Positions 17,801 through 26,026 of a DNA stretch of 64,000 nt are shown here, piece after piece. The DNA lies in IMG/VR virus record IMGVR_UViG_3300031997_000001, positions 62,001 through 126,000 of that record. The stretch is one strand, 5' to 3'. Within the stretch, counting starts at the first letter, position 1, and each line of letters opens with the position of its first letter. Under the pieces are notes generated by a model that worked only from the letters and a program-made list of their open reading frames with translations, had not been told where the DNA came from and did not search any database. A program made the translations under genes and the position numbers.

Positions 17801-20800
17801 GTCCGCGCCCGACGCTTCATGGCAGAAATACTGCGTGCCGTGACAGTCTGCAATCCTGCGAGACACGATGCCATTCATACCGCTGTAAGGTAGGCCACAC
17901 AGCAGGATGCAGCCGGAATATGGCGCACCATATACGGCGCCGAACCTGGAATTATTTATGTCGACCGTCGCACCAGACAACGCAGTGACGCACCAATTTA
18001 CAACAATGCTGTTTATGTCGCAATCCTCTATGCTCGTGATTCCGCCTTGGCAGACAATCCCGGTATTAGATATCAAGCAATGGTCGAACTTACAAGACAA
18101 CGTGAGAGCCGCACCGACATTTAGTACGCTGCCGCTATCGCTCGTGCCATACATTCCAACGTTATTAAAATAGCTTCCTATGAGTGTCGCTTCGTGGAGA
18201 TCAAGCTCTCCGTTGATCATCCCCACCGTACTGCCACTCGCGATGAATTGCGGACCGGAAAAACCTACTGGGGGAATGCCGCCAGTGATAGTAGAATCCT
18301 TGATCCTAAAAGTGGCATAAGCGTCACAGAGTCGACCGACTCTCCCAGTAATCGTGATATCTGTGTTTTCGAGTTCGATAACATCCCCGCCAAGGCCGGA
18401 TGCGTATAGACAATCATGCCTATTTATGGCACAGTTCTCGAATCTTAGTAGTACATCGCCTGCGTTTTGGGACCATATAATTGGCGAACCGGACGCCGTG
18501 CTATTACCATAGAACCTGATGTTCTTAAAGACCTTGGGATATAATGCCCCAGCGCTGTCGTTTATGGAGAATACCGGGACCCCCGACGCACCATAAATGA
18601 CAGTACCCTTGCCAACCGCTGCTAACCCGTCTGGAATTCCATACGTTCCTTCGAATACTATTGGAACAGCCTCCGGCAGGATGACAGTGCCCAGGCCAGA
18701 GCTCAGCCAGTATTTCCCCTCCCTCAAGATGATGGTACCACCTTCTAAATAATGTAGGGCGTTGACCGCCGATTGGATGTCCTGGAAATCGCCATTACCA
18801 GCCGGATCGACTACGAGCGTGGCCGCCCTGGGCCCGACGGCCTTCTCCATGGAGCCCATGAACAGGCCGGAATGACTGGTAGCCTCGCCAATCCTCTGAT
18901 CAATGGCGCCCCAGAGTATGCCAATACCAGCACCACCAGCACCAAGGCTGCCGCTGTACAGCTGGGTCGGCATTTTGCTAATGAGGTCGCCTGACAAGCC
19001 GACCCAGACCGGCTTGCTGATGATGCCGGAGAAATTGAACGTCGTGCTGGAAATCCTGCCGCGATGATATAGCCTGGCATTCTGTCCGGATGCGACGTTG
19101 TCTGCGACTATACCGACGGCGGGCATTCGGCCGGAAGAGTTGGGTAGACCTGAACGTATCCCGCACATCGCGATCTGTAGATAGCCGCTCTGGGTGAAGG
19201 CCACTGCCTTCACACCAGAGATCATCTCGGCAGTCACGAAGTAGTCGTCGACTAGATATCTAGCACTGTCGATGATCGCGCCGGACGCGAAGTGATGCGT
19301 GGAGACTTGCCCGGAAGCGATATTCCCGGAGGTGATAATGCTGCCGGAGTTATATCCGCCAAAGATGTGCAGCCCAGAGTTATTAAGAACTTGGGCGATA
19401 ACTTGCTGGGAAGCCGGGTAGGGCGGTGGCGTGTTTACAAGGAAACCATTATCACCAGACCCCACCCAGACAAGCGAGCCCGGAGCCCAACCAGAGAATG
19501 TAATCCAGTTATTTGGATGGAATAGCTTGCCAAGGACATAAGTCGGCTTTAGCGCGGTATCGGCAACAATGCCAATAGCGGGCATGCGGCCTGATGAAGT
19601 CGCACCAGCCATTATCCAAGTATCAGACACTCCACCGCTGGTGGTTATCGCGACGGCTCTTGGGCCAACAACAGCCGGATTGAATCCTTCTCCCGGAGTA
19701 ATCGTAGAATTTACTACAAGCTCAGTGTTCGGATAGAAGCCGCTGGCGAGTGATCCAGAGACGACTGCGCCGTCGCCGATGAAACCAGAGGTGACGCAAC
19801 CAGAGGTTAATGCTACACTGGGGCCTTGCCAGCCCTGATAGCCTTGATAGCCTTGCCAGCCTTGATAACCCTGGAATCCTTGCAGACCTTGGGTGCCTTC
19901 ACTCCCAGGGCCCTGCCAGCCCTGACTACCCTGGAGCCCCTGCCAGCCTTGATAACCTTGCCAGCCTTGGTTCCCTTGCCAGCCTTGGAAACCTTGCCGC
20001 CCCTGGTATCCCTGCCAGCCCTGATTTCCCTGATAACCTTGCCAGCCTTGGTTCCCTTGCCAGCCTTGGAATCCCTGACCGCCTTGATAACCCTGCAGGC
20101 CTTGGAAGCCCTGCACCCCAAACATTCCCTGCCAGCCCTGCCAGCCCTGATTCCCTTGCCAACCTTGATTACCTTGCCAACCCTGCCAGCCCTGCGTACC
20201 CTGGAGACCTTGCAGGCCTTGCCAACCTTGCCAACCTTGGAATCCCTGACCACCCTGACGGCCCTGAAGGCCCTGCACACCTTGTACGCCCTGGAGCCCC
20301 TGTAGGCCTTGCCAGCCCTGCCAGCCTTGCTGGCCCTGCTGACCCTGATAACCTTGTCCACCGCCGCCTTGCCAGCCCTGATTACCCTGCTGGCCCTGCA
20401 AGCCCTGCCAACCCTGATTCCCTTGATAGCCTTGGGCTCCTTGGTAGCCCTGCTGGCCCTGCCTCCCCTGCTGACCCTGCTGGCCCTGCTGGCCTTGCTG
20501 ACCTTGTAGGCCCTGCCAACCCTGCCAGCCTTGCTGACCCTGCTGGCCTTGCTGGCCCTGATAACCTTGTCCGCCGCCGCCTTGCCAGCCCTGACCACCT
20601 TGTTGACCTTGTAGGCCCTGCTGACCCTGGACGCCCTGCAGACCTTGGAGTCCCTGCCAGCCCTGCCAGCCTTGCTGACCCTGCTGGCCCTGGTAGCCCT
20701 GACCGCCACCGCCCTGCCAGCCTTGCTGGCCTTGCTGACCCTGAACGCCTTGTAGTCCCTGCCAACCCTGATTCCCTTGCCAGCCTTGAGCTCCTTGGTA

Positions 20801-23800: not shown

Positions 23801-26026
23801 GCCCTGCTGGCCCTGCTGACCTTGCTGACCCTGCCAGCCCTGTTGGCCTTGCAGGCCCTGGAGACCCTGGAGTCCTTGCCAGCCCTGTTGGCCCTGCTGG
23901 CCTTGTACGCCTTGGAGACCCTGGAGTCCTTGCCAGCCCTGCTGACCCTGCTGACCCTGCTGGCCCTGGAGGCCTTGCTGGCCCTGCTGGCCCTGCAAAC
24001 CTTGGAGACCCTGGAGTCCTTGCCAACCCTGCTGGCCCTGCTGGCCCTGCTGACCTTGTTGACCTTGCTGACCTTGCTGGCCCTGAAGTCCTTGCCATCC
24101 TTGCTGGCCTTGCTGGCCCTGCTGACCCTGTAGTCCCTGCCATCCCTGTAGTCCCTGCCATCCTTGCCATCCTTGCTGGCCCTGCAAACCTTGGAGACCC
24201 TGGAGTCCCTGCCATCCCTGTAGTCCCTGCCATCCTTGCTGGCCCTGCAAACCTTGGAGACCCTGGAGTCCTTGCCAGCCCTGCTGACCCTGCTGACCCT
24301 GCTGGCCCTGGAGGCCTTGCTGGCCCTGCTGGCCCTGCAAACCTTGGAGACCCTGGAGTCCTTGCCAACCCTGCTGGCCCTGCTGGCCCTGCTGACCTTG
24401 CTGACCTTGCTGGCCCTGAAGTCCCTGCCATCCTTGCTGGCCTTGCCAGCCCTGCTGGCCCTGAACGCCTTGGAGGCCTTGTGGTCCCTGCCAGCCTTGT
24501 TGACCCTGCTGACCTTGCTGACCCTGCTGGCCCTGAACGCCTTGGAGGCCCTGCCAGCCTTGCCAGCCTTGATAACCCTGGAGGCCTTGTAGTCCCTGCC
24601 AACCCTGCCAGCCCTGCTGACCTTGTTGACCTTGTTGACCCTGCTGGCCTTGGAATCCCTGAAGTCCCTGCCAACCTTGTTGACCCTGCTGGCCCTGCTG
24701 GCCCTGAATGCCTTGGAGTCCTTGCCAGCCTTGATTACCCTGGAGGCCCTGGAGGCCCTGTTGGCCTTGGACACCCTGAAGGCCTTGGAGTCCTTGGAGC
24801 CCTTGCCAGCCTTGCTGGCCCTGCTGACCTTGCTGGCCCTGATAACCTTGTATGCCTTGGAGGCCTTGGAGTCCCTGTAGTCCTTGTACGCCCTGAAGGC
24901 CTTGGAGGCCTTGAAGTCCTTGCCAACCCTGCTGACCCTGCTGGCCTTGGAGTCCTTGCAGGCCCTGATAACCTTGCTGACCTTGCTGGCCCTGGACACC
25001 CTGAAGGCCTTGGAGCCCTTGCCAGCCCTGCTGACCTTGAAGTCCTTGCTGACCTTGCCAGCCCTGCCAGCCTTGCTGACCCTGTTGGCCCTGCTGGCCC
25101 TGCTGGCCTTGGAGGCCCTGCTGGCCCTGCTGACCCTGAACGCCCTGAAGACCTTGGAGTCCTTCGTTTCCTTGCCAGCCCTGCTGACCCTGCTGGCCTT
25201 GGAGTCCTTGCAGGCCCTGATAACCTTGCTCGCCGCTGGGCGCGATTGGGCCCTGCCAACCCTGCTGACCCTGCTGGCCCTGATAGCCCTGTAGGCCTTG
25301 AACTCCAAAGCCTTGCCAGCCCTGCTGACCCTGCTGACCCTGCTGTCCCTGTAGGCCCTGAAGGCCAAAATCGCCTTGCCAGCCCTGCCAGCCTTGATAA
25401 CCCTGGCCGCCTTGCTGGCCTTGCTGACCTTGTTGGCCCTGATAACCCTGGAGACCCTGAAGGCCAAAATCGCCCTGCCAGCCCTGTTGGCCCTGCTGAC
25501 CCTGCTGACCCTGGAGTCCCTGATAGCCCTGCTCGCCGCTCGGCGCGATCGGGCCTTGCCAACCCTGCCAGCCCTGCTGACCCTGAATACCCTGTAAACC
25601 AGGCTCACCATACCCCTGCCAGCCTTGACCGCCCTGCTGGCCTTGCAGACCATCGACGCCCTGGTAACCTTGCGTGCCTGGGCTTCCTGGACCCTGCCAG
25701 CCTTGTCCACCCTGCTGACCCTGGAGGCCATCTACGCCTTGATAGCCTTGCGTGCCGGGGCTGCCGGGACCCTGCCAGCCTTGACCGCCTTGTAGGCCAT
25801 CAAGACCCTGGAGGCCTTGCAGACCTTGCAAACCTTGTGGTCCATCCTGGCCTGGTTGGCCAGGCTGACCTGGCTGGCCAGGCTGACCTGGCTGGCCTGG
25901 CTGACCTGGCTGGCCAGGAACGCCTGGCGGTCCCTGCGGGCCCTTGCCGCCTGGAGTGCCGCCACCGTTTTTGATACGTTGCTTTTCTGGCCAGGTGAGT
26001 CCAGGTTTGTCGCAGCCGAGGGCCAT
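14810..26026 (-). CDS. Giant collagen-like fibre protein (3738 aa): about 2040-aa Gly-X-Gln region followed by repeated cement-like modules and two beta-helix-like domains
   Basis: Continuous ORF; GXQ repeat from about 25945 to 19820; repeated SGRMPA(I/V)G modules; two [23 protein letters not shown] pectin-lyase-like starts. Confidence 0.9.
19820..25945 (-). repeat. Gly-X-Gln coding repeat (9-nt period, about 680 triplets)
   Basis: GGN-NNN-CAR periodicity is visible throughout; X is mostly Q, L, W, V, Y. Confidence 0.95.

Follow-up and report, generated by a model that had tools for sequence, protein, structure and literature searches.

A giant collagen-like protein with glutamine at Y and frequent tryptophan at X encoded by an uncultivated virus

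What does a virus make from more than 2,000 residues of an almost pure glycine-X-glutamine repeat, and what could hold such a chain together? The question is raised by open reading frame A (ORF_A), a gene on the 235-kb viral contig IMGVR_UViG_3300031997_000001 (= JGI Ga0315278_10000011), of which we analyzed 64,000 nucleotides, positions 62,001 to 126,000 (the window, to whose numbering all coordinates refer). An earlier note made from this sequence had placed a collagen of about 2,040 residues at 19820-25945. The collagen tract is found there, but its coding strand is the minus strand, and it forms only the N-terminal 55% of what is probably an intact giant fiber protein. According to the ORF list and translation, the whole gene (14810-26026, minus) begins with ATG and encodes 3,738 residues (~389 kDa), in the order Pro-rich cap, collagen, T1, T2, BH1, T3, T4, BH2, T5, and T6, where T denotes a beta-tulip module and BH a beta-helix. 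The gene, its frame, the composition and grammar of the tract, and its conservation are established, as are the phage context and, at the level of models, the folds of the C-terminal domains. We favor, with a probability of about 0.6, the reading that ORF_A is a homotrimeric collagen-like virion fiber of approximately 0.59 micrometers, with C-terminal trimeric modules that set the register and glycan-directed domains that serve host capture.

The collagen-type tract (19817-25960, minus; ORF_A residues 23-2070) is 2,048 residues long and is composed of 666 in-register G-X-Y triplets, in 24 runs of which the longest has 161 triplets, and 23 short breaks. It matches the Pfam collagen family PF01391 with 277.6 bits for a 483-residue piece and with 93.9 and 116.7 bits for two others (curated cut-off, 27.2 bits). 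Judged by this profile and by its periodicity, the tract is a member of the collagen-like proteins at the domain level. The near-invariant Gln at Y described in the earlier note is present in 616 of the 666 triplets (92.5%), and the frequent Trp at X amounts to 19.1%, alongside Gln (32.3%), Leu (21.2%), Val (7.2%), Tyr (5.7%), and Gly (4.5%). Over the whole tract, Gln accounts for 41% of residues, Gly for 35%, and Thr for 0.3%. Pro and charge are as scarce as had been claimed (29 Pro residues, 1.4%; 20 charged residues, 1.0%), but Pro is unevenly spread: 13 of the 29 are held by residues 25-63 of a Pro-rich collagen cap (25838-25960, minus; residues 23-63) that includes (GQP)x7, and the others lie mostly within break motifs. 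Residues 820-2039 are free of Pro and residues 289-972 free of charge. The cap is likewise present in two Trp-rich relatives (L137 and L163). Imino acids, charge pairs, and Thr, the means by which known collagens are stabilized, are scarce in the tract; this property separates known collagen subclasses and does not define the fold.

The block grammar of GQQ, GWQ, and GLQ/GVQ triplets that had been proposed is real and, as the transition frequencies indicate, directional: GQQ(1-4) leads to GWQ(1-2), GLQ(1-3), GVQ, and back to GQQ. GQQ is followed by GWQ with a frequency of 0.25, GWQ by itself (0.28), GLQ (0.39), or GQQ (0.03), GLQ by itself (0.36) or GVQ (0.24), and GVQ by GQQ (0.71). Trp blocks recur every 5-10 triplets without a strict period. 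Regular Trp spacing, or a strict superhelical stripe, was ruled out, as there is only a weak signal at 7-8 triplets (autocorrelation ~0.08). GWQ had been said to precede almost every interruption; it stands one or two triplets ahead of the break in all 23 cases. The breaks are exclusively Gly-X-Gly one-residue deletions (e.g., GWQ-G[Y/F]G-VQ), four-residue breaks, and triplets in which Gly is changed to Ala (GPI-APS), kinds that are typical of non-fibrillar collagens. Type IV and other non-fibrillar animal collagens show the same short breaks and place a hydrophobic residue at them or beside them, but they have only the repeat in common with ORF_A, in which the breaks are stereotyped and always follow GWQ. 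As a continuous triple helix (0.286 nm per residue) the tract would measure approximately 586 nm, in agreement with the earlier estimate of about 0.6 micrometers.

The reading frame of ORF_A is open without a break across 11.2 kb. Over the tract, only minus frame 0 and one plus frame are free of stops. The latter, a 2,054-residue ORF (19810-25974, plus), was ruled out as a gene; its product would be rich in Ala, Pro, Leu, Gly, and Asp and has no three-residue periodicity, and it is open only by virtue of lying antisense to a repeat with few stops. Unlike this shadow ORF, the minus frame continues past the tract into a folded, conserved C-terminal half. Within the tract, Gly is encoded with all four third bases, Gln with both codons, and Leu with all six, and tandem copies are only 63-78% identical as DNA, the G-X-Q pattern being preserved nonetheless. 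A chance origin of the tract is excluded by its sequence. A scan of metagenome contigs for the coding pattern [10 protein letters not shown] returned 62 stretches. Among them are orthologs from three independent assemblies (L144, which is complete with 3,496 residues, L162, and L175); they have 643-681 triplets, and apart from one substitution their N-termini equal the 22 non-collagen residues that open ORF_A (25961-26026, minus). In the aligned columns Gly is kept in 97.5%, Gln in 90-91%, and Trp in 70-80%, and 34-44% of the identical residues have different codons. The orthologous tracts differ through blocks of inserted or deleted triplets, and column-by-column orthology within the repeat is uncertain; the amino acid pattern outlasts the DNA divergence either way. 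Because the amino acids are kept while the codons differ, the frame and the length of the tract are real.

The C-terminal half of ORF_A (1,668 residues) is predicted to be built from six modules of beta-tulip (phage cement-like) type together with a pair of right-handed beta-helices. Searched as a whole, it gave no significant direct match in Pfam or PHROGs. Five copies of a module of ~135 residues, which is repeated also in large metagenomic fiber-like proteins, were delimited on the minus strand. Four were placed by motif and alignment A1, namely T1 (19322-19732; residues ~2099-2235), T3 (17312-17722; residues ~2769-2905), T4 (16859-17269; residues ~2920-3056), and T5 (15287-15697; residues ~3444-3580), while T2 (18863-19273; residues ~2252-2388) is the copy that was modeled with AlphaFold2 (AF2). 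Twelve of the 42 modules in alignment A1 match PF09956 (Phage_cement_2; best E 8.7e-5). The T2 model has a predicted local distance difference test (pLDDT) score of 81.6, and its first 35 Foldseek matches are nearly all phage capsid decoration proteins or the base of the phi29 head fiber (gp8.5), with modest scores (best E 3.5e-3; template modeling (TM) score 0.45-0.48). The chain ends in T6 (14813-15289, minus; residues 3580-3738, 159 in all; alignment A3), a divergent sixth beta-tulip-like module that hhalign relates to the others with a probability of 94.9% (A3 against A1; E 4.7e-8). Within the C-terminal half, conservation is highest in T6, which has 91-93% identity in L144 and in P0003, whose overall identity to ORF_A is only 39%, and 51% identity in L153; the middle of the half is far more variable (50-79% identity). 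Beta-tulip modules alternate with long 'SG-x-[IV]-x-SG' repeats in three collagen-free, fiber-like relatives of this half with 970-2,482 residues (P0004, P0005, and P0019), one of which lies on a 590-kb contig and one of which is filed under a Parcubacteria genome bin.

Strung between these modules are the two predicted beta-helices, both of which open on [10 protein letters not shown]. BH1 (17657-18844, minus; residues 2395-2790) is a right-handed parallel beta-helix in its model. BH2 (15617-16855, minus; residues ~3058-3470; a member of alignment A2) is a second beta-helix-like region, which resembles BH1 mainly over the first 90 residues (local phmmer domain match, E 2.2e-15). Against PDB sequences, the beta-helix profile A2 matches pectin lyase 7chu (4.3e-11), pectinesterase 1xg2 (3.1e-9), and AlgE4 (2pyg; 6.7e-7), and the best Foldseek match of the BH1 model is likewise AlgE4 (6.4e-6), followed by phage tailspikes and PL6 lyases. 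Identity to solved structures is 10-14%, and among 1.8 billion cluster representatives there are only 9 sequence relatives of the beta-helix.

ORF_A is one representative of a sizeable uncharacterized family of aromatic G-X-Q collagens that is widespread in environmental viruses. A protein search with the 483-residue piece returned 3,680 collagens at E < 1e-10; within the top 120, Gln at Y exceeds 80% in 11, Trp at X reaches at least 17% in two, and Gln at X exceeds 8% in none. Relatives with G-X-Q collagen carry the tail-fiber domains Peptidase_S74, BppU_N, Mtd_N, and Collar. The members closest in design (P0035, P0079, L137, L153, L163, L155, and L149, among others) likewise have Gln at Y and Trp or Phe at X, with an aromatic triplet just ahead of Gly-X-Gly breaks, and some of them share with ORF_A the N-terminal cap, T6, and the two partner genes that lie downstream. 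An aromatic triplet precedes the break in 167 of 177 cases in close relatives and in 87 of 157 in others, and also in P0035 and P0079. In contrast to the other members, ORF_A and its orthologs are the longest among those found and have an unusual ~30% Gln at X. Sister classes at metagenome loci include one with 32-35% Trp at X and another with up to 82% Phe/Tyr that approaches (GFQ)n; tracts of the latter kind, with Gln at Y, run to 250-520 triplets (L149, L167, L170, and L176-L178) and are more extreme in composition than that of ORF_A. A direct fusion, with nothing between, links T6 in L153 and L132 to a collagen that has at least 376 triplets and 34% Trp at X. T6, as the sole non-collagen domain there, is therefore the constant partner of the collagen and a natural candidate for setting the three-chain register.

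Literature and database searches found no named or published member of this family; prior characterization of homologous Trp-containing G-X-Q collagens, which would have counted against the earlier note, was thus not encountered, numerous as the metagenome relatives are. No characterized homolog of the tract was found, and on sequence evidence it uses none of the stabilizing strategies described for bacterial and viral collagens. When 185,579 prokaryotic species genomes were scanned, the pattern GWQGWQGxQG occurred in more than 120 stretches, but no long mixed-grammar collagen was among them; each is either a lone chance match or a simple (GWQ)n repeat, and some contain stops. In another viral contig (L008, IMGVR_UViG_3300011116_001121), two GFQ/GWQ-rich collagen-like proteins (8302-11565, minus) adjoin a gene for the largest subunit of RNA polymerase, and aromatic G-X-Q collagens therefore occur also in an apparent eukaryotic giant virus. 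The Pro-rich cap, the C-terminal half, this wider family, and a paralog of ORF_A within the window all go beyond the earlier note.

How might such a protein work? In the favored reading, T6 and the other beta-tulip nodes would bring three chains into register, a role suggested by the fact that the structural relatives of such domains, the beta-tulip capsid decoration proteins and phi29 gp8.5, assemble as trimers on capsids (PMC7602432). The G-X-Gln tract could then zip into a collagen-type triple helix of ~586 nm, which the 23 short breaks would segment into stiff rods of ~2-140 nm with hinges. The two beta-helices between the beta-tulip nodes may bind, and perhaps cut, host surface polysaccharide. 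Since beta-helices suggest polysaccharide recognition or cleavage, the whole of ORF_A could be a very long capture or adsorption fiber, located on the virion and binding the host. A variable middle of the C-terminal half beside a constant T6 is as expected of host-recognition parts. Both polarities were considered: the conserved N-terminus and the variable middle fit a tail fiber with distal binding domains, and a whisker anchored on the capsid agrees with the tiny N-terminus and with a T6 that is conserved and resembles decoration proteins.

Stability of the helix may derive from hydrogen bonding and hydration of the Gln side chains and from sheer length, with aromatic residues clamping the breaks. 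In host-guest work Gln is said to be among the better non-imino residues at Y. Many weak Gln triplets could add up to a stable helix over a great length, a possibility based on the observation that recombinant bacterial collagens reach a plateau of stability at ~150 residues (PMC7824840). The Pro-rich cap and the aromatic residues might lock vulnerable ends and breaks. Alternation of hydrophobic with all-Gln bands might in addition serve in bundling or in sugar binding, given that aromatic residues are reported to favor the side-by-side assembly of triple-helical peptides (Kar et al. 2009, as listed in PMC7824840). We tentatively propose, at somewhat less than even odds, a natural collagen class that does without imino acids, charge pairs, and Thr. 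The helix would be held by its extreme length and by the near-invariant Gln at Y, whose side chains would hydrogen-bond to the backbone or build hydration ladders; GWQ/GFQ would clamp the breaks, and alternating aromatic/aliphatic and all-Gln bands, in units of ~7 triplets (~6 nm), would let fibers bundle or bind polysaccharide by sugar-aromatic stacking. If this proposal is correct, ORF_A would be the longest known collagen-type fiber on any virus.

Several points weigh against a virion capture fiber. The trimer and the triple helix are themselves predictions from sequence. Host-guest work from 2000 by Persikov and colleagues reportedly found Trp the least favorable residue at X, and we know of no natural Pro-free helix of such length. 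Tail fibers have a recognizable N-terminal attachment domain, and the 22-residue N-terminus of ORF_A is too short for one, being below the size of a globular anchor domain. The C-terminal half was not matched to known tail-fiber families in PHROGs or, by tblastn, to any of 50,697 phage records, and the BH1 model is of moderate confidence only (pLDDT 67). The gene sits in a glycosyltransferase-rich island, outside the tail genes and ~35 kb from a recognizable baseplate gene. Finally, the number of triplets may be slightly off, because the tract holds an exact DNA repeat of up to 149 nt and was assembled from short reads.

A fiber on the capsid rather than on the tail is a variant of the favored reading with the other polarity and another attachment site, and we regard it as possible, if rather doubtful. 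T6 would then sit on the capsid as a trimer of the decoration or cement type, the collagen would point outward, and the Pro-rich cap would lie at the free tip. The beta-tulip modules and T6 are indeed like capsid decoration proteins in sequence and fold, T6 is both the most conserved part and the sole non-collagen domain in L153 and L132, and the N-terminus measures just 22 residues. A collagen-like capsid binder is known in SPP1 gp12, and the phi29 head fiber, a beta-tulip base with a trimeric fiber, offers a further precedent (PMC7602432). However, decoration proteins bind mainly via an N-terminal arm (PMC7602432), and on that side ORF_A has modules or collagen. Six in-line copies alternating with beta-helices resemble the nodes of a fiber more than capsid binders, and no stand-alone T6 homolog of 87-278 residues was found. 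A 389-kDa protein on all quasi-threefold sites of a jumbo capsid would moreover outweigh the capsid, so that such a whisker would need to occupy few binding sites.

The remaining explanations dispense with the triple helix, the virion, or the gene itself. The tract could be a disordered, Gln-rich, low-complexity region prone to gel or amyloid formation, or a polyglycine-II assembly, and the near lack of Pro and charge, the 41% Gln, and the abundance of Trp, a poor triple-helix former, speak for this. We nevertheless consider it unlikely, since disorder or amyloid needs no Gly at every third residue, would not yield collagen-type breaks exclusively, and does not account for the fusion of the tract to modules of a trimer type. 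Polyglycine-II bundle proteins, such as snow-flea antifreeze and those of the phage S16 gp38 type, pack their helices face to face, for which the majority of positions must be Gly or another very small residue. The tract has 35% Gly and bulky residues, mostly Gln, Leu, and Trp, at both X and Y, and with its collagen-type breaks and its modules with trimeric relatives, this makes the polyglycine-II alternative raised in the earlier note improbable. The protein could also be collagen-like and yet no part of the virion, being exported or released from the infected cell to remodel its surface, matrix, or biofilm. The neighboring glycosyltransferase and methyltransferase genes, in place of tail genes, and the missing PHROG structural match would suit that role, which we consider quite improbable: no signal peptide-like N-terminus is present in the ORF_A translation, the module types are those of virion proteins, tail-fiber domains occur in G-X-Q collagen relatives, and other viral contigs preserve the cassette of collagen gene and two partner genes. 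Least probable is a mis-assembled or inflated repeat, or non-coding repeat DNA. Repeats are hard to assemble, and several other assemblies break in or near collagen genes, but the uninterrupted frame, the similar triplet numbers and the same start in three independent assemblies, and the divergence of the copies, with synonymous variation that points to selection on the protein, argue strongly for a real gene.

Compared with known collagens, ORF_A combines shared and unshared features. Like Scl1/Scl2, BclA, and EPclA-D of Escherichia coli O157 prophages, it has G-X-Y repeats without hydroxyproline, favors Gln at Y, and has a use in phage fibers as its likely setting (PMC3368898, PMC8968730). 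In those proteins a non-collagen domain trimerizes the chains (PMC3368898, PMC8968730), and the C-terminal modules are the candidate counterpart. Known prokaryotic and phage collagens have tens to ~100 triplets, with Pro at X, charge pairs, or Thr, whereas ORF_A has 666, with Pro and charge each at ~1%; it is about seven times longer than typical bacterial or viral collagens. Viral collagens have ~13% Gln at Y and 1.5% at X (PMC3368898, Table 4), values so different that the composition of ORF_A falls outside the known viral and bacterial ranges, and the EPcl collagens of E. coli prophages contain no Trp, Phe, Tyr, His, or Cys (PMC3368898).

The C-terminal half can be compared with phi29 gp8.5, lambda gpD, TW1 gp56, and the YSD1 decorator in its coupling of a beta-tulip-like module to a fiber, here predicted to be trimeric; the match is one of fold and, via PF09956, partly of sequence. 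Unlike the decoration proteins, which are small, stand alone, and bind threefold sites of the capsid, ORF_A has six in-line modules in one 3,738-residue chain. The phi29 fiber is an alpha-helical supercoil, whereas that of ORF_A would be collagen and lies N-terminal to the modules, and a capsid-binding role is only a candidate function. With tailspikes and depolymerases (Fri1 gp49, Kp32 gp38, and CBA120 TSP3), AlgE4, PL6, and pectin enzymes, ORF_A shares the right-handed parallel beta-helix; in contrast to these, which are 10-14% identical, it embeds two copies in a fiber, with a predicted glycan role.

The design rules for collagen rest on Pro/hydroxyproline, charge pairs, and a few polar residues. 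The ORF_A tract is twice as long as type I collagen, is kept by selection, lacks Pro over 1,220 residues, and has Trp in one of five triplets; if it folds, it would extend these rules and provide a scaffold that is expressible in bacteria, uncharged, and strongly ultraviolet-absorbing. The main interest of the protein thus lies in collagen biophysics and materials, and a second interest in the adsorption biology of jumbo phages, where it points to fibers several times longer than the particles that would carry them.

A second giant collagen gene, the paralog ORF_B (28064-34663, plus), is divergently transcribed from ORF_A and could encode a second such fiber. It comprises an N-terminal domain of ~120 residues, a collagen (~28451-30742), a 254-residue globular insert (30743-31504), a second collagen (31505-34159), and a C-terminal domain of 167 residues; Pfam gave no match to the N-terminal domain, the insert, or the C-terminal domain. 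A start at 28064 is more likely than one at 28427, because the N-terminal domain is conserved in L163. The 530 triplets of ORF_B have Gln at Y in 90% and Trp at X in 16%, most of its 28 short breaks are preceded by GWQ, and its DNA is ~70% identical to the ORF_A tract.

Directly downstream of ORF_A are two paralogous genes (13110-14800, minus) for proteins of 289 and 273 residues, which on sequence are probable fiber partners. In BLASTP, they match the L153 neighbors in the same order with 40% (E 1e-64) and 33% identity (E 3e-34). Both proteins carry an N-terminal 'SG-x-I-x-SG' repeat and have a GIYD motif in common; Atlas searches pointed to Uroviricota clusters and to folds of a lectin-like or Mtd_N-like type, which serve only as leads.

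Both collagen genes are embedded in a glycan-synthesis island (491-12642 and 35404-41765, both minus) with matches to GT25, GT8, GT31-like, two GT4, and Anp1/GT2-like glycosyltransferases. It also encodes a 1,230-residue protein with five GT2 domains (38073-41765), a nucleoside diphosphate (NDP)-hexose C-methyltransferase-type protein (4402-5616), and a protein with three methyltransferase domains (5627-7300). The Ser/Thr/Gly-rich C-terminal half of the fiber is a candidate glycan acceptor for these glycosyltransferases. Hydroxylysine-type collagen glycosylation of the tract is excluded by its single Lys (K28 of ORF_A, among 2,048 residues), and Trp C-glycosylation at the ~35 W-x-x-W motifs is unsupported, there being no membrane-bound GT-C type enzyme among the proteins scanned. 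Mimivirus likewise encodes collagens beside many glycosyltransferases of its own, and the GT25-family match extends the likeness (PMC9546862); however, the Mimivirus chemistry acts on hydroxylysine, and the virus described here is a tailed phage, not a eukaryotic giant virus. One GT4 glycosyltransferase of the island (9184-11580, minus) is split by an intein with a LAGLIDADG homing endonuclease, and a 1,226-residue protein encoded upstream of the window on the same contig also bears an intein.

The nature of the virus is indicated by genes near the end of the window. A 134-residue ORF (60360-60764, plus) matches the N-terminus of the T4 major capsid protein Gp23 (3e-12), and a 1,243-residue ORF that starts at 60817 (plus) and runs past the window end matches the P2 gpI baseplate protein (Tail_P2_I, 8e-5); minus-strand ORFs at 60234-63168 are probably shadows. 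The protein encoded at 56292-57857 (plus) joins an endonuclease-like N-terminal part to a Mom-like (GNAT) domain for DNA modification. The Gp23 and P2 gpI matches, the cement-like modules, and the Mom-like protein together place this uncultivated virus among jumbo-size tailed phages. A eukaryotic giant virus as the source, which the Anp1- and GT31-like glycosyltransferases and L008 had brought into consideration, was ruled out by Gp23, Tail_P2_I, and the cement-like modules. Neither megablast of 36-60 kb of the window nor tblastn of two large unannotated proteins gave a match to phages, a tRNA search found none, and inspection of 38 starts for Shine-Dalgarno sequences revealed weak purine-rich stretches only. 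Between the two collagen genes, a 195-residue ORF (26566-27153, minus) has a weak SprT-like or metalloprotease-like match. A third short collagen-like stretch is found in a 556-residue protein (49003-50673, minus) with a weak match to the tail-fiber family phrog_5073 (E 2.6e-8).

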